Shown here: positions 31,976 through 44,830 of the stretch, piece by piece
How the letters are laid out: each line of letters begins with the position of its first letter
Numbering within the stretch: the stretch's first letter is position 1
DNA from: Lama guanicoe
Lineage: Eukaryota
Assembly: GCA_013239625.1 (NCBI GenBank)
Contig: MU054466.1
Span: 744,001 to 808,000, forward strand
Direction: 5' to 3'
Length of the DNA: 64,000 bases
Notes under the pieces: model-generated
The model's input: the letters and a program-made list of their open reading frames with translations, nothing else
What the model was told of the DNA's origin: nothing
The model's database searches: none
Translations under genes and position numbers: made by a program

Positions 31976-32023
31976 ATGGCTGCCACGCCGCAGCTGCGGG
32001 ACCGTCTGAGCTTCTTGCACCGG
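31976..32023 (+). CDS. TEPSIN: TEPSIN exon 1 coding part
   Basis: atcATGG start; CGG|GTgagt. Confidence 0.93.
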
Positions 32024-35000
32024 GTGAGTGCGGGCGGCCCCGGCCTCTCCCCGGGCCCAAGCCGACCACTTCTGTGGCCCTGCTTGGCCCCAGCCTGGTC
32101 CCCGCGCTCCGGGCCCTCCGGCTCTTCCCGGGGTCGGTGTCCCCTCCGTCCTCCTCCGGCCCCTCCATCCCCTCTATCCCCTTTGACCCTTCCGACCCCT
32201 CCCACCTCTCACCTCGCCTCTTCTCCCTCCTTCCCGCCCCTCCGACGCCGCAGACCCCTCCTCTTCTCCCCTCCGACCCTTCCGCCCCTCCCGCGGCTGG
32301 GGGGCCGCACCGCACGTACTTGGAGGGGTCAGGTCAGACCACCGCAGTGTCAGGTCCACTGGGGACTGTGAGACCCCTTGAACAGTATCCAAGTCGGAGA
32401 AGAGAGCCGTGGGACCCAAAGTTTTGTTTTTTTCAACCTAATTTGAAGTAGCATTAGAGAAAAAGAAACCCAGTGAGCCGTGAACTCTGTCCACAGTAAA
32501 CACAACCAGACACTGGCCTGGGAGCAGGGGAAAACCGTTTATTCCGCAGCCCTGATGGGAGGGAAGGCCCTGCGCGCCCCTCCAAGCTGTGGCAAGAGGG
32601 CCGGACGTTTTTAAGGCAGAACTAGGGAGGAGCGGTGCCCAGCTGCAGAGTTAGGCGGAGTGGGGCAGTGTCGGTGGGATAGGCTGCTCTGTCTGATAGC
32701 TGGCAGTTATCCTCCTTTGGGGACTGGGAGACAGGCCCTGTCCTTCCTGGTGGTTATGTTTCCAGGAATGGGCTCCAGGTCCTTCAGAAAGAGGCTCCTG
32801 AGTTGTAGGAGGTCCACATGCACAGTTGTAGGTTCTTTTTAGAAAATGCTCCAGGAGTGGGAGGCTGGGGCTTGTCACCAGGTGTAGGCCAGAACTAACA
32901 GGAAATTCTCCTGGCGCCTTGAACTTCCTCAGGTAGGTGTTTGGTTGGGGTGGGGGGTGGCTGGGCTTACCCTGGTGCTTTTAGAAGCCCCCTCAGTTCA
33001 GCTCCCCTTTTGGTCTTGGTGGACAAATCATGTAAGCAGTGTGAGCACACAGCCTCAGATGACATTCAGGCAGGTCTTGTGACACTAGGCATCCACCAAT
33101 CAAATTGCGTCTGTGGCCAGCGCCTCACAGTGCACCTGAGGCCTTCTGTCCTGTCTACACCGAGCCTCGCGCCCCGCAGATGCACAGTGATGGGGGAGTG
33201 GATGTTTCCCGTTTTCACGTCTGTAAACAGTATGTCTCTGTGCGGAGTGAGCACGTATCGTAAAGGCGTTTGTGCTCACAGGTAACCGTGAGACGCTCAA
33301 GGAATTAAGTTGTTCTTGCTCTGGCTTATTTCTGTGAGGCCCATGCCCGGGAGTGGAGCTGTGGGGCGGTCAGGCCGAATGGCTGTGTCACGTTGCTGAT
33401 CTGTGCTCCAGGAGAAATGGAACCTTCCCGGTGCCCTGCGCGGGAAGGGGGCTCGTCTTGAGTTGTTCTGGGTTTTTTTTGCCAGTCAGTAAGTGGGTAC
33501 ATGTAAAGTCGCCTTTACGTTGCTGTGTGGCTGCAAGCATAGGGCCCTGGGGGCCGTGACAAATCCGGACCCAAGCAGAGGGCCCGTCGCCGTGGAGACC
33601 ACCACCTTCCGGGGCGTTTGTCCCACCCTCCGGCAGGGAGGCTCCTGTGGGCTCTCTGTGGCTGTGGGACCGCAGCAGTCCTGGCCGGGCCCCCTGACCA
33701 GATGGCGCGTCAGGAGTAGGATGTGTGGAGACTGGGACCGCTGCAGCCCTGCGGACAGGGCCCTGTGGCCCCCTCGGCAGCGGCTGGCCTCCCGGCTGCC
33801 GCGGGCCCCGTGTACGCGGCCGCTCACTGTGGGTGGGGCTCCGCTCCCTTTCAGCTCCCGATCCTCCTGAAGGGCACGGCGGACGACGATGTCCCGTGCC
33901 CCGGCTACCTGTTTGAGGAGATCGCCAGTATCCTTCCCGCGGACGCCTGGGGGCTGGGGCAGGGTTGCTGGGCTTCTCCTGCCCGAGGGGCCCCGGGCCC
34001 CGTCCCCGTAGTAACCAGTGTGGGCGGGGCCTAATGGCCGCATTCATCCCAAACCAGGGCCTGGGGTGGGTGCCTGCAGCGGGGCAGCGCGGCTTCTTCC
34101 CCGCCCCACCCCCCGGCCAGCCGGCCTCCTGCGGCCCAGGGTCAGCTCGCCCCTTCCCTAACCCGAGTGCCTCCCAGAGATCTCCCACGAGTCCCTGGGC
34201 AGCAGCCAGTGCCTCCTGGAGTACCTCCTGAGCCGCCTGCACAGCGGCTCCGGCCGCGTGAAGCTCAAGGTGAGTCTGAGCGTCTCGGCAGGCCCTCCCC
34301 GGGGTCAGGTCGAGGCCCAGGTCCTGCCCCAGGTGAGGCCGGCGGCAGGGGGCTCTGCTGGGTGGGGTCCCCTCCTTTGGGCCCAGCTCGGCCCCACCTA
34401 TCTGTCGCCCCAGGTGCTGAAGATCATGCTGCACCTGTGTAGCCACGGCTCCCAGTCCTTCCTGCTCATCCTGCAGCGCAACCCCGCCTTCATCCAGGAA
34501 GCCGCAGGTACGGGGTCTGCCCAGCCGGCCCCACCGAGGCACAGGGAGCAGGGCGGCTGGGGCAGGTCGCAGCCGGATCGGTAGCCTGGGCCCCCGCCTC
34601 CCTGACCCTCCCCCGTGCTTCCCCAGGCCCCATCCACGCCGTCATCCACTGCCAACACCTCTCTCCGCTCCCACCACACAGGACCCTTTCCTCCTCCCTG
34701 CCCGGCAGACTCCGCTGGGGTCTCCTCCAAGCCCTGCCTCCTCTCAGCCTCCCCCCACCTGCCACCCCACTCCTCCACTGCACTTACCACGCAGGGCGGA
34801 ATGGCCGTGTCTGTCTCTGAGCCCTGCCAGGTCTTTGTGGCCAGACTTTTCCTGTCTGCCCCTGTGACCTGTGTGCTGTAGGCTTTCGGCAAGCGTCTGT
34901 GCTGCCGTCCCTGCCACGGGCTCTCTCTTCTCCCCAGGGCTGCTCCCCGGGGCCCTAGTAAACCTTCCGCTCTCAGAAGGGCTGTGGGAGGACGGGACTG

Positions 35001-38000
35001 GTGAGGCCATCAGGAGAGGTGGGGCTCTGGCCTGTCGTGATCCAGGCGACAGGTGGGTCTGGGGTGGAGTCCCGTCCCTCACCCATCCCCCGGGCCAGGG
35101 TCGTCCCGCGCCTCTTGTTAACACAGACTTGCGAGCTGGGGGCCTGAGGTCTGCTCCTTGGGTGGGGCGAATGGAACAGGGAGGCCTTGGCCTTCAGGCA
35201 AGAACCCACCCAACCAAGCTGTCCCCAAGAGGGCAGCGCCACGATGGGGACCAAGTCCTCTGGCCACCACTTGCAGGAGATCCTCGGTAGTTACAGAGTA
35301 TGTCCCACCCGCCGGGTGCTGGGACTCACCTGCCTGCATCCTTTACTGCAGATGGGGCTACGGCCAGGGTGGGGCGGGGCTGCCTGTGGTCCTGGGCAGC
35401 TGTGTCGGTGCTTTGGAGATGGAGCAGCCTGGGAAGGGGCCCAGAGGCACCAGGGCTGGGGTGCACCCATCACAGCCGAGCTCCCCAGAGCTCGTGCCCC
35501 GCAGCAGTCCTGCTGGGTCATCCTCACCAGCTGGCAGGTCACAGTGACCCACTGGGCAGCTTGCACAGCTGCGGCGGGTGCCGGGGGTCACCTCTGTCCT
35601 GGTCCCCTGGAAGAGAGCAGGTGAAACGGACTGAGGGCAGCAGACCGGGTTCTCTGTTGGCACCAAAATCTCTCCAGCTCTGAGCACTGGCCCCAGGGGA
35701 CGGTGCGCAGATAGCCCTGCATGGGCTGTGAGAGGAGGTGGTGCTGGGGCGGGGGGGTGCACAGAGAGGACAGTCCTGTGTCTGGGGTCCAGCAGGGTCC
35801 TGCAGGGAGGGTGGGAGCTGCAGCAGGAACGGCAGGGAGGTGCTGCTGTCCCTTCACTCCTCCTGTGTCCGGCTGCCCGCCCACTGGTTGCGGGGCCATG
35901 GTCTGCACATCCTGGGGCTGGCACCAGCCAGGTGAGAAGAGAGATGCGTTTGGACAGAGGAAACAGGCAGGCCCTGCTCTCGCTCTGAGCCCTGAGAGGA
36001 GGGGGGAGTGAGGCACGCGCGGTGGTGGGGGTTGTCCCCCCGGGAGTGCAAGGGCCCTGAGGCAGGGAGAGCCTGGGCGGGGTGTAGTGCAGCGGAAGCT
36101 CACCTGATGAGGCCCGACTGAAGCTTTACGAGAGGAGACGATTGAGGCCGAGGAACCTGAGTTTTACTGTCAAGCCCCTGGGATACTCGAGGGTTTTGAG
36201 TTGCACGAGGCCCCGTTCCGGTTGCCGCCGGGTGGTGGAGGGGTCCGGGGAGGCGGTTGGGCTGCTGGTGCAAGAGCCCAGGCAAGAGGCGGCCGTGGGG
36301 TCAGGGAGCGACGCGCCCTGTGGTGCCCCGGAGGTCGGATCTCAGCCTCGTGGCTTGGGGTGTGGGCGAGGGGGAAGCCGAGGGGCTGCGAGGGCCGGGC
36401 TGTCGCGGGCCTGGGATGGCGGGGCATCTGTGCTTTATAAAGCCCACCCCGGCCCCACAGACACGGGCTGGCGGGGGGCACGGAGCTCAGGCTGCCCATG
36501 CAGGGAGGGGGCTTGCAGGCCACGCCCCTCGAGGTGGTCCACAGAGCCCAGCTTGGCTCTCCTCTCTCTGCCTCGTCTGCAGTTTTCACAGGCCCCCCGG
36601 ACCCTCTCCACGGGAACAGCTTGTACCAGAGGGTGCGGGCGGCCGCCCAGGTGAGCCCGGGACCCCGGTCGCTCCCTGTCCCCCCACCCAGGGTCCTGGC
36701 TCTACCCCTGCTGCAGGGCTGGAGCCCTGTGCGTGGTCCTCTGGGGAGGGGTGTGTGCGGAGCAGGGGCAGGGCGACAGCGGTGGGCTCACGGCAGTGCT
36801 GAGTGTCTGCTGTCTTCACCCAGGACTTGGGGGCTGCCCTGTTCTCAGACGCCTTGTCACCTCTGCCTCCCTCCCAGCCTTCCAGGGCCCTGCCTCCAGC
36901 AGGTATGCAACCATGTCCATCACGGGGGGCCAGGTTCCCCTCTGGGCGGGCTCATGGTCCCTCCTCCCCTAGTGTCCCGGGTGTGCTCACTGCTCCTCGG
37001 AGGGCCACTGACACGGGCGTCCCCGCAGGCATGGGCTCCCAGTCCAGGCCCCAGAGTGCCCTGCAGGGCTTCGGCTACAGCAAGGAGCGGGGCCACACAG
37101 GTGAGTGCTGAAGGGGCGAGGGGCCGGCCGATGGGGCGAGGGGGCGAGGCGGCGAGTGGGCCCCTCAGGCCCCACACTGACATCCCTCCCACCCCTGGCA
37201 GCAGGGCAGGTGTGGTCGGCTCTGCTTAACTGACAGGTGAGAAGCCAGGTTGAAGGTCAGCCTGCACTTGGGCCCCCAGCTCTGCTCCTCTGAGGGCAGA
37301 GGGCGGGGGCCCCAGCTGTGACAGAGATGACCTAGGGCAGGAACGGTGCCAGTCATGCTTGCTGGGGGTGCCTGCGGCTTGCAGCGGGGCCGTGTGGCCC
37401 TCTTGTGGGCTCTGGGCTGTGTCCCGCTGTTGTGCTAATGGTCCTGGTCCTGGTCCCCGCTCTCAGTCCCCTGGTCCTTCTGAAGTTCTGATCCCTGAGG
37501 TGGGTCTGCCTTGGAGACCTCACCTGTTCTTAATTTGGGGGTGATGGTTGGATCCCTTCCTTGGGGTGCTCACACAGGAGAGCCCCCAGCACTGGACATG
37601 AGCCTCCCTAAGCGCCCACGGAGGTTTGGGGCTCTCAGGACAAGCAGGAGGCCCCTTGCTCTGAGGCGGGGACCCAGGGGACCGAGGGGCACAGCTGAGC
37701 TGTAAGCTGCCGAGTGTTCAGGCTGCACTGGGCCAGAGCATGCTGAAGTGAGTTCACCGGAGAAGCTTCCCGACGGGCCTGGTTCCTCTGCGCGCCCTCT
37801 GCTCTGTGCAGCTTGTGTCCTGACCTCCAAGCCATGGGTGGGGAGCAGCGTGGAGACAGGGCGTGGGGGTGGTGGCTGCACCATGTCCCCTCTCCCTCTG
37901 GTGCAGGCTCTGCAGGTGAAGCCTTCCTGTCCACCATCCAGAAGGCCGCAGAGGTGGTGGCCAGCGCTGTGCGCCCTGGGCCTGAGAGCCCCAGCACCCA

Positions 38001-41000
38001 GAGGCCCCTGCCGCGGGGTAACGCCTACCAGCCAGCCGTGACACCTCCAGCCAGCCTCAGCCCCCCCACTCCTGGGAACCCACTCCCCGCAGCCGGCCTG
38101 GGCGCCCGAGGTATCAAGTGACACCCCTCCCACAGTGGGGTCTGGCTTCCCCTCCCAGGGCCCCGGGCTTCTGTCACCTGCTGGCTGGGTGGGAGCAGAT
38201 GGAGGAGGAAGAAAGCAGCTCACCTGTGGTGGGGTGGTGTACAGGCCCCGCCCTCCTGTCCCACACCACCTCTCAGAACTCAGAGCCAGCCGCCCAGGTG
38301 ATGAGTTCCACGTGGCCTCTGTGGTGGCTGCATCCAGACCAACCATACCTTGTCCCTGCGCTGTCCAATGTCTCTGTCCATCTGCTCTGGGTGGGAGCTT
38401 CAGTGTAACGGCCCCACCAGGGGTGGGTCCTATCCAGGTCCCAGCTGTTCAGATGCAGGACTAGGGTTGAGCTGGGACAAGAACCCAGCCCCAGCCCTCG
38501 TCCATGCATTCGACACGTTTGGGTGGCTGTGCGGGACGGCAGGGACGCCCGAGGAGGACCAGGCTCTGGGGCACGTGTGTTCTGGTGCACTGGGGGAGAG
38601 GACGGCCAGATAGCTGTCCGTGACCTCCACCTCCACCTCACTCAGCAGCTGCCGTCATTTTCATGGCTCAAAGGAAGGGTGTCAGGACTCACCAGGATTT
38701 GAGAGCCACTGTGCTGGCAGTGTCCCTGCTGCTCTGCACATCCAGCCCCCGCCTGGCCCTGGTTCCTGACACGGCTTCCTGCGTCTTCCGGGCGGGGCAG
38801 GTCCCCTGGAAGGATGTGCTCCTCTCTGCCCCCATCTCCCCTCACCTGGTGTGTCCTAGAGCTGGAGCCCAGGTGGCCGCCCCGTCCACATCTCAGGACC
38901 CAGACCCCAGGCCTTTCCTGCATCTCTCTGTTCTAGGATCCTGGGGAGGCGGACACGAGGCCAGCCTGAGGCCCCAGAGGGCCTTACCCTCGGTCACTGT
39001 CTCCCCCAGCAGTGAGACGCCAGCCTGGGCAGGCCGGGGGCGGCTGGGATGAGCTGGACAGCAGCCCCAGCTCTCAGAGCTCCTCCCAGGAGGACGGCGC
39101 CCTGGGCGGGGCCTCAGACTCCAGCAGTCGGTCGGGCAGCGACAGCCCCTCAGTTACCAGCCGGGCGCCCAGTGACCTGGCAGAAAGGTGAGCCTGGGCC
39201 CAGGGCAACCCCCCCATCCCAGCTCCAGGATCCCACCGGTCGGGGAGGCACCCTGCTCTGTCCTGACCTGCATGTCTCCTACAGGGTCGAGGCCATGACC
39301 CCGGGTGACTACCAGCAGGAGCTGAGCCTGGTCCGGGCTGTGACTCGGGGGCCGCTTCCCTTCTTGAGCCGAGNNNNNNNNNNNNNNNNNNNNNNNNNNN
39401 NNNCTGCACCCCCCGCCCTTGCCCCAGCTCTGCGCCCCCACCTGGCCCCTGTCCCACTGCCCAGGTGCCCCCGTGCAGGTGTGGACTCCTCAACTGTGAG
39501 GCTGTGCTGGAGCTGCTGATCCGCCACCTGGGCGGGACTGGCGAGCACGAGCAGATGGTGAGGGCGGCCGCCGCGGGGCGGGGGGTGTCCTGCCCTGGAG
39601 ACAGGTGGGGGGTGAGCACAGGACTCCCGTGAGGGCCCTTGCTGACCGCAGGCCTGCCCCGCAGAGAGCCCTGGGGGCCATCGCCTCCCTCGGCTGCAGT
39701 GACCTGCTCTCCCAGGAGCGCGTCCTGCTGCTCGCCCGGCCGCGGCTGCAGGAGCTCAGTACGGGCCGCCCCGGACCCGTGACCAACAAGGCCACCAAGG
39801 TGAGTGGCGGAGCGCCGCCCCCGCCCCGATCCCCAGCCCCCAGGCCCCCGCGCCGCTCACAGACCCTCCCTTTCCTGCCTGCTGCCCCTGGAGCAGCAGT
39901 TGGGGGCCTGGTGTCTTCCCATTCCTGGGACCCCACGCTTGCCCTCCCCGCTGCCTAGCAGCTCTGTCCTTTGGGCAACACCGTCCCCCTCATGACTCAT
40001 CTTACACACGGCTTCCTGCAGGAAGCCCTCCTTGGCTGCTTGGATGGATCTATTCCTCTGTTCTCCGCTGTGTCACAGCTCATGGGTCTGAGCTCTGCTT
40101 CCAGGTCCCCAGCTCCTGGAAGACGGAAGTGGCTCTGTGTGTCTGAGTTCTCTTTCCGCTGACAAGTGTTGGGGAGCAGCCCAGGATCTTCCTCGGGGCC
40201 TCTAGGCAGCAGCCAGGCCCTGGCCCCTTCACCCGCTGTTGGCTTCCCGTTTCCTCTGTGGTGGCTGAAAATTCAGCTCCTTAGTCACCTGTCCCTAACT
40301 GTCCTCCCCAGCGCTGCTGCTCCCCAGGGTGGGACTACAGGAGAACGGGTGGGAGCAGCTGGCCGGCCCTCCCCTGCTCTGGGCGGCGGCACTGAGGCAG
40401 GCACTGGTGCGGGGAGGGCCAAGCCGTCCGCGATTCCTGCGGAGCACAGAAGCCTCACCGATGCCCCTTTTCTTCCCTCATCCAGATCCTGAAACACTTT
40501 TTTTTTAACATTTGTTATTGATTTATAATCATTTTACAGTGTTGTGTCAAATTGCAGTGCTCAGCACAATTTTTCAGTCATTCATGGACATACACACACT
40601 CATTGTCACATTTTTTTCTCTGTGATTTATCATAACATTCTGTGTATATTTCCCTGTGCTATACAGTGTAATCTTGTTTATCTATTCTACAATTTTGAAA
40701 TCCCAGTCTATCCCTTCCCACCCTCTGCCCCCCTGGTAACCACAAGTCTGTATTCTCTGTCCATGAGTCTATTTCTGTCCTGTATAGATCCTGAGACACT
40801 TTGAAGCCTCCTGCCGACAGTGGCCTCCTGCCCGGAAGCCCCCAGCTGAGCCTGGCCCCACAGCTGCACATGTGGGCCCATCAGACCTGCTGACCGATGC
40901 CCTGCCTTTAGCCGGGGACCAGGCCTTCCTGCAGCCTCTGAGTTCAGCTCTGTTCACACCCAGGAGCACTGCTCCCCCATCAGGGCTGCATCCTGGCCCT

Positions 41001-41339
41001 GTGTCTCCCACCCCCCTGGACAGCTGCCTGCTTCCAGCCCCTGGGGATGCTGTGGAGGCTGAAACCAGACTGGCAGCTTCCACAGAGCAGGGGCCTGGAT
41101 CTGAGCGGGGCCCAGTGGGCATGGACACCCGACAGTGGGGGCCAGAGCTGGGCCCGGGCCCCAGCGGCAGCTCCCACTCCTTATTTGCTGGCATGGAGCT
41201 GGTGGCCTGTCCCCGCCTGGTGGGGGCCGGGCCTGCTGTGGGGGAGCCCTGCCAGGCCCCCTGGATGTCGTCTCAGAGGATGGCAGCCAAAGAACCGTCT
41301 GGCTCGGAGCCGTCGGCTTTCGCCTTCTTAAACTCGTGA
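31976..41339 (+). CDS. TEPSIN: TEPSIN (ENTHD2), AP-4 accessory protein, ~595 aa: join(31976-32023,33855-33927,34178-34269,34414-34507,36583-36650,36824-36902,37029-37100,37907-38110,39010-39187,39285-~39398(gap),39479-39557,39665-39799,40788-41339)
   Basis: MAATPQLRDRLSFLHR|LPILLKGTADDDVPCPGYLFEEIAK ENTH domain; GGWDELD; VHS-like domain; C-terminal SLFAGMELV and SAFAFLNS AP-4 ear-binding motifs; phases consistent. Confidence 0.95.
32145..32290 (+). repeat. C/T-rich low-complexity tract (CCCTCC-type)
   Basis: repeated ccctcc/cctccgac units just downstream of TEPSIN exon 1. Confidence 0.65.
32481..33000 (-). mobile_element. Candidate solo ERV LTR in TEPSIN intron 1
   Basis: 520 bp, inverted termini TGAACT...AGTTCA, AATAAA on minus strand (~32538-32543), lower GC than flanks; TSD not clean. 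Confidence 0.4.
33855..33927 (+). CDS. TEPSIN: TEPSIN exon 2
   Basis: tttcAG|; followed by U12-type donor GTATCCTT. Confidence 0.92.
33928..34177 (+). other. U12-type (minor spliceosome) GT-AG intron, TEPSIN intron 2
   Basis: 5'ss GTATCCTT; branch TTCCCTAAC 34154-34162, ~16 nt before CAG; no long polypyrimidine tract. Confidence 0.88.
34178..34269 (+). CDS. TEPSIN: TEPSIN exon 3 (KISHESLGSSQCLLEYLLSRL...KLK)
   Basis: cAG|...AAG|GTgagt. Confidence 0.92.
34414..34507 (+). CDS. TEPSIN: TEPSIN exon 4 (VLKIMLHLCSHG...QEAA)
   Basis: cAG|...CAG|GTacgg. Confidence 0.92.
36583..36650 (+). CDS. TEPSIN: TEPSIN exon 5 (VFTGPPDPLHGNSLYQRVRAAAQ)
   Basis: tgcAG|...CAG|GTgagc. Confidence 0.92.
36824..36902 (+). 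CDS. TEPSIN: TEPSIN exon 6 (DLGAALFSD...PPA)
   Basis: cAG|...CAG|GTatgc. Confidence 0.9.
37029..37100 (+). CDS. TEPSIN: TEPSIN exon 7 (GMGSQSRPQSALQGFGYSKERGHT)
   Basis: cAG|...CAG|GTgagt. Confidence 0.9.
37907..38110 (+). CDS. TEPSIN: TEPSIN exon 8 (GSAGEAFLSTIQKAAEVVASA...), symmetric 204-nt probable cassette exon
   Basis: tgcAG|...GAG|GTatca; phase 1-1. Confidence 0.85.
39010..39187 (+). CDS. TEPSIN: TEPSIN exon 9 (AVRRQPGQAGGGWDELD...)
   Basis: cAG|CAG tandem acceptor; AG|GTgagc. Confidence 0.9.
39285..39373 (+). CDS. TEPSIN: TEPSIN exon 10, 3' end lost in assembly gap
   Basis: tacAG|G GTC GAG GCC ATG...TTG AGC CGA G, then N run. Confidence 0.85.
39374..39403. other. Assembly gap (30 N)
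   Basis: run of n. Confidence 0.99.
39479..39557 (+). CDS. TEPSIN: TEPSIN exon 11 (CGLLNCEAVLELL...EQM)
   Basis: tgcAG|...ATG|GTgagg. Confidence 0.9.
39665..39799 (+). CDS. TEPSIN: TEPSIN exon 12 (RALGAIASLG...NKATK)
   Basis: gcAG|...AAG|GTgagt. Confidence 0.92.
40501..40785 (-). mobile_element. 5'-truncated L1 3' end, antisense, with 17-bp TSD (40484-40500 / 40786-40802) duplicating the TEPSIN last-exon acceptor
   Basis: T-run, then typical artiodactyl L1 3'UTR antisense (..ttccctgtgctatacag..tctatcccttcccacc..ggtaaccacaagtctgtattctctgt..); flanks AGATCCTGAAACACTTT / AGATCCTGAGACACTTT; AT-rich island in GC-rich DNA. Confidence 0.9.
40788..41339 (+). CDS. TEPSIN: TEPSIN terminal exon 13 (ILRHFEASC...SLFAGMELV...SAFAFLNS*)
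   Basis: tgtatAG|ATC CTG AGA CAC TTT GAA; in frame with ORF 40872-41339. Confidence 0.88.
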   Translation: MLRHFEASCRQWPPARKPPAEPGPTAAHVGPSDLLTDALPLAGDQAFLQPLSSALFTPRSTAPPSGLHPGPVSPTPLDSCLLPAPGDAVEAETRLAASTEQGPGSERGPVGMDTRQWGPELGPGPSGSSHSLFAGMELVACPRLVGAGPAVGEPCQAPWMSSQRMAAKEPSGSEPSAFAFLNS

Positions 41340-41580
41340 CCTCGTCAGCCTGGGCCACCAGCAGAGTCCCTGGCCCATGCTCCCAGGACCCCCCAACTTT
41401 GTCCTGTCCCCAGTGCCTACAGCCCCCATGTCCCATCAAAGAGTGGTTCCCCTCAGGGGTCTGCGGTCAGCCTCGCCCTCCCCCTGGCCTCTTCCCCTTG
41501 CCCACTGAGGCCTTGGTGCAGGCAGGCAGCCAGCCAGGCAGGCTCAGTGGACGGCCCATCCCGTGATGAGACCAGCCACC

Positions 41581-41586
41581 AATAAA
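41581..41586 (+). terminator. TEPSIN poly(A) signal AATAAA
   Basis: canonical hexamer ~240 nt after the stop. Confidence 0.8.
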
Positions 41587-42606
41587 ACCCAGGTGATAAC
41601 TTCAGGAGTCCACGAACCCAGCAGATTCAGGCCAGCACTGCGGGAAGGGGTCGTCCTTGCCCATGGGGGCCTGCTCCCCAACCTTGCGTCAGAGGCAGGT
41701 TCCCTGTTTTTCTTCTGGTGGGGCAGGACCCCCTACAGCCTGCCCTGTGGATTTGGTGACCAGGGAGCAGCCCTGAGTGCCCGCAGGACGGGCACAGAAC
41801 GAGGAGCTGAATGCTCGCTGAGACTGGCAGCCCTGCCTCCTGCCTCACGGCCGTCTGGTCTGGCAGGATGAGCATACTGTCCATCTTTCCATCTGCCAAA
41901 GGGATCAGAAGGGAGGGCAGAGGGGCAGATGGCTTGGCGTGGCCTGCCTGGAGGGCACGGGAGCAGAGGCCTGGTGACCTAGCTGAGACGTGACGCCCCT
42001 TGGACCTGCCCCAAGTCCCTGGGGTCCACACAGGCATGCAGAGCAGGGCACCAGATGAAGGCGGGGAGGGCCTGCCTGCAGACGGGGCCCAGCCTCCCCC
42101 CCCCCCCCGGCAACAGGCAACGGTCCAGGGAGGACCCCAGAGCCACCTCGGCCACCCCCACCCCGACCTGTCTCCTTTGTCAGGGGCCGGCTGCCTGGGC
42201 TTGGATCCCCACAGCAGTGGCTGGCAGGACCTTGCTAGTGCTCCCCGCGGGCCCCCGGGGGAGGCCCCTGCCCGCCTTCCCTCAGGAACAAGGATTGTTG
42301 TGGGTTTGGAACCACTGCTCGGGTCTTGGTTTGTTTTTGAGCTCAGATTCCTCCCTCAGCAAGGAGTGGGGTGGGCTGGGTCCTAGGCAGCATGGCACCT
42401 TATCTTCATCAGTCTGGGGCCCTTTCCAGCACCAGGTCCCTATGTGGCCCGTGCCAGCTTCCTTTGCCATGACCGTGGCCTCCAGACCGCACGGCACCTT
42501 GGATGAGAGCTCTGGTTCCTCTTGGAAGAGCCGGGGATGATCTGGGGTCACACCTCCTAGATAAACACTGCTTTTAATACAAAGCTGTGCCGTTTGCTTT
42601 TTCCTT

Positions 42607-43690: not shown

Positions 43691-44830
43691 AAACTGCAGG
43701 CCAGTCTCCTTCATGAACATAGGTGAAAAAAACATCCTCAACCAAACATTAGCAAACAAATCCAGAAGCACACGAAAAGAGTGATACATCAAGATAAGTG
43801 GAGCTTTTCCTGGGGATAGAAGGCTGAGTCAGCATCTGAAAGTCAGTGCAATTCACCACATCAACATACTAACGGAAGAACCACCACCTCACTTTGAATG
43901 AGGCAGCTAAGAGAACGCAGAGGCAAACCACAGACTGGGAGGAGGTGTTTGCCACTCACAGATCTCAGGGAGGACCTGTATCAAGAACGTGTAGGGAACA
44001 CTCAAAACTCAACAAAACAAAACCCCCTGTTTGCAAAGTGGGCAAAAGTCTTGGACAGAGACTTCGCCAAAGGAGGTATGTGGGTGTAGGGCAGAGAAGC
44101 GCACGAGTAGATTCTTGGCATTATTAGGGAAATGTCACTGAACACCATACAGGGACCACTGCGCACATATTAGAATTACTTTAATAATAATTTAAAACTA
44201 ATACCAGTGTGAGGGCAACAGAGAGCAGTCAGAACTCACATTGCTGGTGGGGATGTAAGAAGACACACCTTTGGAAAAGTCTGGAAGTTTCTTATAAAGT
44301 TAGACATACACCTACTATGCAATCCAGCAGCTTCCTCCTAAGCATCTACCCAAGGGACGTGAAAACTTAGGTTCACACCAAAGCCTGAAGGTGAATGTTT
44401 ACAGCAGTTTCATTCACAATTGCCCCACACTGGAAACAACAGCATGTCCGTGGGTTGAGGAGTCAAAAGTGTGGTTCACCCTTTTCACCACCAAAAGTGC
44501 GGTGGAATACTAGTCAGCCGTGAAGACGAACACGGATGCCTCTCACACTGACGGAAGCCAGGCCCCAAATGCTACATGTAGGATTCCATTTCTGTGATGA
44601 CTGTAAAAAGGGAACACCATAGTGACAGAAAACAGGTTAGTGGTGGCTGGGGCCCGGGATGGGGAGGGTTCGGCTTCAAAGAGTCAGCCCCAGGTTTGGG
44701 GAGGGGAGTGTTCTGTGCCTTGTTTGTGGTGGTGGTAACATAGCTGTATCACTTCTCAAAACTTGGCTGTACGCCCCCAAAGTGTGGTTTTTATTGTATG
44801 CACATTTTTAAGGTTTTAATTTTAAAAAGT
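43690..44830 (+). mobile_element. Old L1 (L1M-type) ORF2/3'UTR fragments, sense
   Basis: ccacagactgggagg, ttgctggtgggg, agttagacatacacctac, 3'UTR-like end with ttttattgtatgc. Confidence 0.8.

Follow-up and report, generated by a model that had tools for sequence, protein, structure and literature searches.

Retroposon insertions at or near splice acceptors have been described in several settings. In merle dogs, an antisense short interspersed element (SINE; SINEC_Cf) lies at the border of intron 10 and exon 11 of PMEL (SILV), and the original acceptor is contained in its 15-bp target-site duplication (TSD). In alleles whose poly(T) is short, splicing is normal and goes to that acceptor beyond the element, whereas alleles with a long poly(T) use a cryptic acceptor (PMC7349775). 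De novo, L1-endonuclease-dependent insertions of Alu or L1 elements at the acceptors of disease genes, such as that of NF1 intron 14, result in exon skipping, and the same acceptor has been hit by elements in both orientations (PMC3219598). In exonization, antisense Alu and L1 elements can supply both the pyrimidine tracts and the AGs of acceptors (PMC7349775). Here, an insertion is described in the acceptor region of the last coding exon of the tepsin gene (TEPSIN) of Lama guanicoe, within a stretch of 64,000 nucleotides (GenBank assembly GCA_013239625.1, contig MU054466.1, positions 744,001 to 808,000 of the forward strand) that is referred to below as the window and whose numbering is used throughout. 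The insert is identified as the 3' end of an L1 element, antisense to TEPSIN, and it stands between two copies of a short target site, each of which holds an acceptor AG. It is likely that the downstream acceptor, the intronic part of which would have been built from the L1, is the site in use and that full-length tepsin is made by way of it, with the native acceptor preserved upstream as a decoy. The features on which this reading depends are, in order along the window:

39665-39799, + strand: penultimate coding exon (exon 12), ending in ...TNKATK, with a donor GT at 39800, as delimited by translation and tblastn.
39800-40483, + strand: native last intron as far as the native AG, with CTCAC as a candidate branch point (by match to yUnAy; A at 40457) and a pyrimidine tract at 40464-40483 in which 19 of 20 bases are pyrimidines.
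40484-40500, + strand: upstream copy of the TSD, AGATCCTGAAACACTTT, which holds the native AG (40484-85) and the sole mismatch between the copies, an A at 40493 that turns the Arg codon into Lys.
40498-40506, - strand: T-run (the L1 poly(A) in reverse complement); its first 3 T also belong to the TSD and are those that primed at CTTT/GA.
40507-40785, - strand (antisense to TEPSIN): 5'-truncated L1 3'-untranslated region (UTR) fragment, GC 0.35, no CpG, colinear with L1 3' ends.
40519-40521, + strand: TGA that would end the product of the upstream acceptor, translated as ILKHFFFNICY and a stop.
Terminal ~20 nt of the L1 fragment, + strand: tctatttctgtcctgtat, the pyrimidine tract and -3 T of the downstream acceptor.
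40786-40802, + strand: downstream TSD copy, AGATCCTGAGACACTTT, with its AG at 40786-87 and the ancestral Arg codon kept; the acceptor in all gene models examined.
40788-41339, + strand: last coding exon, a 183-codon disordered tail and a TGA.
41181-41204, + strand: LFAGMELV, a match to the beta4-ear motif pattern (predicted).
41313-41333, + strand: SAFAFLN, a match to the epsilon-ear motif pattern (predicted).
41581-41586, + strand: AATAAA poly(A) signal, common to both possible terminal exons.

The closest likeness is to merle. In both cases an antisense retroposon mobilised by the L1 machinery lies exactly at an intron/exon border, the original acceptor is within the TSD, a poly(T) on the gene strand adjoins the native branch point, and competing cryptic acceptors are present inside the element; in merle, a short poly(T) allows normal protein to be made, by splicing to the original acceptor beyond the insertion. 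However, the merle element is a SINE, is polymorphic and recent, causes a visible phenotype and has an outcome tuned by a long and unstable poly(T), and its aberrant product carries an in-frame 52-aa insertion at an internal exon. The TEPSIN insert, in contrast, is an L1 3' UTR fragment with a T-run of 9 nt, appears to be common to several Lamini labels, and concerns a terminal exon, for which skipping is impossible and every wrong acceptor truncates the protein. With the NF1-type insertions the locus shares a target-primed reverse transcription (TPRT) product with a TSD that hit an acceptor AG or pyrimidine tract, but those insertions cause an internal exon to be skipped and result in disease, whereas in TEPSIN the site of a last exon was apparently replaced and the change tolerated over evolutionary time. 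As in exonization, an antisense retroelement gives the pyrimidine tract of an apparently working acceptor. Usual exonization creates a new intronic cassette exon, whereas in TEPSIN the exon is an old, conserved coding one whose acceptor has had its intronic half exchanged for transposable-element sequence; its AG derives either from the TSD or from microhomology at the junction. The type of mechanism is already known. The novelty lies in the gene, the tract derived from an L1 3' UTR, a state that is apparently species-wide, and the retention of the decoy acceptor.

Direct reading places 285 bp (40501-40785) between the two TSD copies, which together read AGATCCTGA[A/G]ACACTTT and each of which includes an acceptor AG. 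Along the + strand, the native tract ccccttttcttccctcatcc is followed by the native AG, by ATCCTGAAACACTTT, by the T-run, by 279 bp of AT-rich sequence, and by AGATCCTGAGACACTTT, which leads into GC-rich coding sequence. A repeat search recovered a direct repeat of 17 nt that is identical at 16/17 positions (94%) with a spacing of 302 nt, and a search of the window with the TSD pattern, allowing ≤2 mismatches, returned 2 matches, both of them the TSD copies, where 0.02 would be expected by chance. The insert has a GC content of 0.354 and CpG = 0. From the junctions, the empty site is reconstructed on the + strand as ...ACACTTT/GAAGCC; the nick, CTTT/GA, has 3 T followed by 2 purines and is a loose match to the TTTT/AA-like consensus of L1. 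The T-run (9 nt) lies on the side of the L1 3' end and corresponds to a short A tail of 6-9 A. At the L1 5' junction (40780-40790), the sequence in L1 orientation reads ATCT and, across the border, ATACAGG; the corresponding position in related L1s is ATCTA. At the point of truncation, target and L1 thereby overlap in a microhomology of at most 4-6 nt, which in L1 orientation is ATCTAT, as is typical where 5'-truncated L1s are joined through microhomology. Owing to this microhomology, the TSD/L1 border is not placeable to the base, and neither is the formal origin of the downstream AG from target or L1; the outcome is unchanged by it. The initial annotation, made from the sequence of the window, had described a 17-bp TSD with 1 mismatch that includes the AG, a nick site CTTT/GA and a downstream acceptor with a pyrimidine tract supplied by the L1. 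The repeat and pattern searches agree with the first, the second follows from the junctions, and both the tract and the -3 base are L1 sequence; all of its coordinates proved correct on re-reading.

Relatives of the insert were collected by scanning public metagenome contigs with an 18-mer of the insert, which yielded 66 host-derived contigs (L001-L066). The reverse-complemented insert matched 26 of the 66 by blastn, with partial alignments of 67-88% identity. In a multiple alignment it was colinear with these relatives over its whole length, from the 5' end (ACAGAAATAGACTC...GGTTACC) through ...CTGTATAGCACAGGGAA... to ...CACAACACTGTAAA. Several of the matching contigs show the repeat continuing into an A-rich 3' end or a poly(A) run. 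In one contig (L016), the part homologous to the insert lies ~270 nt downstream of an ORF2-like segment (L016:235-516) that corresponds to residues 1105-1188 of human L1 ORF2p (E 4e-43; PDB sequence search, 9k6g and 8uw3). The ORF2-like contig pieces gave no family match in Pfam. The insert has no second copy in the 64-kb window, and 0 matches were obtained both when viral contigs were scanned for the L1 motif of the insert and when metagenomes were scanned with an exon-side 26-mer. Taken together, the tail, the TSD, the reconstructed nick and the ORF2-linked homology identify the insert as a 5'-truncated L1 3'-UTR fragment, antisense to TEPSIN, and as a product of TPRT; the antisense L1 3' end first proposed is supported by the observed colinearity with L1 3' ends downstream of ORF2. 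It should be noted that the contig collection, much of which stems from Ga0126362, amounts to dozens of short mammalian host contigs with L1 3' ends, some with tails that carry apparent ruminant SINE sequence. A separate trace of L1 is present in the window at 43894-44370 (+ strand), where degenerate open reading frame (ORF) pieces (RQTTDWEEVFATH... and NSHCWWGCKKTH...YPRDVKT) resemble an older C-terminal fragment of L1 ORF2; it lies downstream of TEPSIN, in the AT-richer 42-44 kb, and is unrelated to the insert at 40507-40785.

The gene is identified as TEPSIN (AP-4 accessory protein, ENTHD2). A HMMER search with the last exon (tail) found 13 homologous proteins among 1.84 billion representatives, and those with names are the AP-4 complex accessory subunit tepsin. 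A further protein (P0004) resembles the tail of human tepsin. Camelid tepsin models were found by a word-index search with whale tepsin. The last exon of the window is 100% identical to the C-terminus of tepsin of the alpaca (Vicugna pacos), and alpaca isoform X5 (P0138) maps to 31976-41336 on the + strand by local tblastn. Exon 12 is 96% identical to residues 368-413 of the same isoform and reads ...SLGCSDLL..., with one S/T difference from all alpaca and Camelus models, which read ...SLGCTDLL.... This difference points to a Lamini species or individual other than that of the alpaca reference. Pfam assigns residues 24-131 of P0138 to the ENTH domain (PF01417) and residues 313-417 to the tepsin VHS/ENTH-like (TVHS-like) domain (PF25827), which ends 4-5 residues into the last exon, the remainder of that exon being a disordered tail. 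The tail of tepsin holds two AP-4 appendage-binding motifs, and tepsin needs AP-4 for its recruitment to membranes (PMC11064669, PMC6627992). Both LFAGMELV and SAFAFLN are encoded in the last exon of the window. The patterns that they match, reportedly from work of Frazier in 2016 and Mattera in 2015, are LFxG[ML]x[LV] for the beta4 ear and S[AV]F[SA]FLN for the epsilon ear. Elsewhere in the gene, 30 N at 39374-39403 fall within the coding exon for about residues 333-341 of alpaca tepsin, and 39042-39078 lies, on the protein map, in the exon for the residues immediately ahead of 268, close to the GGWDEL LC3-interacting region (LIR) motif. Additionally, several Camelus tepsin isoforms (P0087, P0098) have an insertion of at least 37 aa inside the ENTH domain (GLLPGALVNLPLSKG...) that has the appearance of intron retention or an extra exon.

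The consequences of acceptor choice were examined by trying each AG from 40484 to 40794 in silico as the acceptor of the last exon. All nine AGs from 40484 to 40766 lead to a stop after 8-79 codons, and the tail is reached from the AG at 40786-87 only (exon start 40788); the added length of 302 nt is not a multiple of 3. From the upstream AG (exon start 40486), the frame reads ILKHFFFNICY, 11 codons and then the TGA, whereas the downstream AG opens the 183-aa tail, with SLFAGMELV and the terminal SAFAFLNS. An mRNA spliced at the upstream acceptor would have a 3' UTR of about 1.1 kb and would not be a target of nonsense-mediated decay (NMD) that depends on the exon junction complex (EJC), because its stop falls in the terminal exon. 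Its product would keep both the ENTH and the TVHS-like domains, since PF25827 ends at residue 417. The insert has neither AATAAA nor ATTAAA on its + strand. A rescue by way of a mini-exon (upstream acceptor, a donor, then downstream acceptor) was considered and rejected, the sole GT before the stop (40514) giving a 28-nt exon with a shifted frame. The use of ORF extent to tell filled from empty sites in other camelids was likewise rejected: with a stop at 40393 and without a start codon in the intron frame, filled and empty sites would yield the same called ORF. For the gene and its products, the initial annotation thus anticipated what was recovered here: a TEPSIN identity, now backed by named homologues, the identity to alpaca and the Pfam ENTH and TVHS-like domains; two predicted ear motifs in the tail, which match the patterns given above; both translations, including the TGA at 40519-40521 and the run to SAFAFLNS; a stop in the terminal exon, reached after 11 codons; and ENTH and VHS-like regions that the truncated product would retain, in agreement with the domain boundary at residue 417.

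Several lines of indirect evidence point to the downstream acceptor as the one in use. In the 90% cluster that holds the alpaca RefSeq tepsin isoforms, 8 of 8 read KATK followed directly by ILRHFEAS, placing the junction at 40788, and 0 of 8 have the end ILKHFFFNICY; these isoforms come from three accession series and differ at the N-terminus and in two internal exons. The tail has also been kept. When the differences between alpaca and Camelus were polarised with seven outgroups, those in the 183-aa tail were assigned to Lamini in 3 cases and to Camelus in 7, with 1 left ambiguous; the tail had no indel, and both motifs were intact. For the 412-aa body the corresponding numbers were 4, 3 and 4. 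The tail is accordingly read as free of relaxed constraint in Lamini. The exon starts with ILRH or VLRH in every full-length ortholog model retrieved, and because of this the downstream TSD copy (AGA, Arg) is taken as ancestral and the upstream copy as changed to AAA (Lys), as had been surmised from the human sequence. Exon context would favour the downstream acceptor as well: GC is 28% after the upstream AG, where a U9 run is also found, versus 65% after the downstream AG, where the native exon lies. We think that the upstream acceptor is a minor or suppressed site because it has lost its GC-rich exon context. The choice made by the spliceosome, and the reasons for it, are read here from these gene models and sequence features, which argue for the half of the initial proposal that saw in the downstream AG a rescue acceptor, through the 8 of 8 alpaca models and an intact, slowly evolving tail.

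The following history would account for the locus. In an ancestor of the South American camelid, a 5'-truncated L1 3' end would have inserted by TPRT at a + strand nick, CTTT/GA, 15 nt into the last coding exon of TEPSIN. If the staggered second nick fell at the intron/exon border, or a few bases from it, the ~17-bp duplication would thereby have copied the acceptor AG together with the first 15 bases of the exon. The downstream copy would then directly front the intact exon, and for this reason gene function would be kept, exon 12 being spliced from 39799 to 40788. The pyrimidine tract, the -3 T and presumably the branch point of this acceptor, for which the adenosines at 40739 and 40771 are candidates, would be L1 sequence, and the outcome would be a full-length tepsin with both predicted AP-4 ear-binding motifs. 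As an intact decoy, the native AG with its branch point and tract would remain 302 nt upstream, and its use would give a tepsin ending in ILKHFFFNICY that keeps the ENTH domain, the LIR motif and the TVHS-like domain and loses AP-4 binding.

The spread of the insert was assessed in 14 DNA runs (5 studies, 5 organism labels), in which 0.87-0.91 of the sampled words of 39600-41700 were present; the ceiling for a genome without the insert is ~0.84, a thin margin to which other L1 copies may contribute by supplying some of the words. The insert is probably common to several very close relatives, most likely species of Lamini. The tail of 6-9 A and the one mismatch between the TSD copies would speak against a very recent insertion. 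Camelus tepsin proteins have the same junction, which is compatible with the insert being either present or absent in that genus, and a published study of Camelus transposable elements gives no L1 dating.

Several observations weigh against the exclusive use of the downstream acceptor, and the upstream acceptor is intact and looks the stronger of the two by sequence features. From this site strength would follow the idea of the initial annotation that the gene may survive only if a strong native acceptor is skipped. Pyrimidines occupy 19/20 positions before the upstream AG versus 14/20 before the downstream one, the -3 base makes cAG upstream versus tAG downstream, and a branch-point match (CTCAC) lies 28 nt before the upstream AG. 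Under the AG-exclusion-zone rule, the first AG after the branch point is favoured (PMC9284458, PMC7317903, PMC1431707), and the upstream acceptor would be favoured by this rule because its AG is the first one after the native branch point. Two more AGs, 40745 (aAG) and 40766 (gAG), closely precede the downstream acceptor, and the fold of 40430-40810 (z +0.35) gave no RNA structure that would mask the upstream AG or loop out the L1. RefSeq models rest in part on protein homology, and a truncated isoform of ~424 aa could sit in another 90% cluster, ranked below the 120 matches listed. Finally, were the insertion very young, the conservation of the tail would be uninformative.

These features bear most directly on the alternative that both acceptors are used appreciably, the upstream one in at least 10% of transcripts, such that Lamini make full-length tepsin alongside a lineage-specific truncated tepsin blind to AP-4. 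This is a minority possibility with several points in its favour: the upstream acceptor has its branch point, tract and AG unaltered and looks stronger than the downstream set, the first-AG rule and the lack of a masking structure (z +0.35) act in the same direction, mixed splicing is known from merle insertions (PMC7349775), and the domain boundary at 417 would let the folded domains survive. However, the truncated end is found in 0 of 8 alpaca RefSeq isoforms, even though these models capture other alternative events, and the upstream AG is followed by AT-rich sequence, rich in U-runs, in place of the native exon context. Nor did the protein searches, which were ill suited to the task, return a truncated end. 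With exon 12 as the query, the sole matches were two genomic ORFs from other species, both continuing into the intron, among candidates limited to 25-79 aa; the last exon as a query, which shares almost no sequence with the truncated form, gave no match above 72% identity; and camelid RNA-derived ORFs were absent from the results of both queries. A literature search on TEPSIN in camelids found nothing.

A more extreme alternative is that splicing goes mainly or solely to the upstream acceptor, tepsin in these animals being blind to AP-4, the downstream ORF an undecayed relic and the RefSeq models artefacts of homology. The same site-strength features and the first-AG rule would be explained by it, but the 183-codon ORF is intact with both motifs present, the tail has 3 changes in Lamini versus 7 in Camelus and no indel, and the downstream site appears in 8 of 8 models across three accession series; moreover, the short A tail and the diverged TSD suggest an insertion that is not very recent, in which a relic should show decay. 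This alternative is unlikely. That the insert is an assembly artefact or a rare allele, foreign to the normal TEPSIN locus, is very unlikely, given a textbook TPRT product (TSD, tail and nick site) of a sort that assemblers do not invent, and 14 of 14 DNA runs above the ~0.84 ceiling, albeit by the thin margin noted above.

The reading in which the L1-built acceptor serves the last exon of TEPSIN remains the likely one, and under it the locus would be a clean natural example of a gene surviving a retrotransposon hit on a splice site, the TSD regenerating the AG and the element supplying the tract. In humans, de novo insertions that hit acceptors mostly cause disease, as in NF1. The terminal exon of TEPSIN cannot be skipped, and this may be why the insertion was tolerated. 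The intact decoy 302 nt upstream amounts to a natural test of 3' splice-site choice, in which the first AG and site strength are set against exon context. It also carries a warning for annotation, as a simple splice-site scorer would choose the wrong site in the last intron of TEPSIN. If the decoy is used, camelids would provide a natural tepsin without AP-4 binding that would be useful for studies of AP-4 and ATG9A trafficking. That South American camelids constitutively make two tepsins, the truncated one being a natural separation-of-function allele, is rather unlikely; if true, the truncated form would be stable, its mRNA escaping EJC-dependent NMD, would keep the ENTH and TVHS-like domains and the LC3-binding WDEL motif, would not be recruitable by AP-4, and could act as a cytosolic competitor for LC3B binding.

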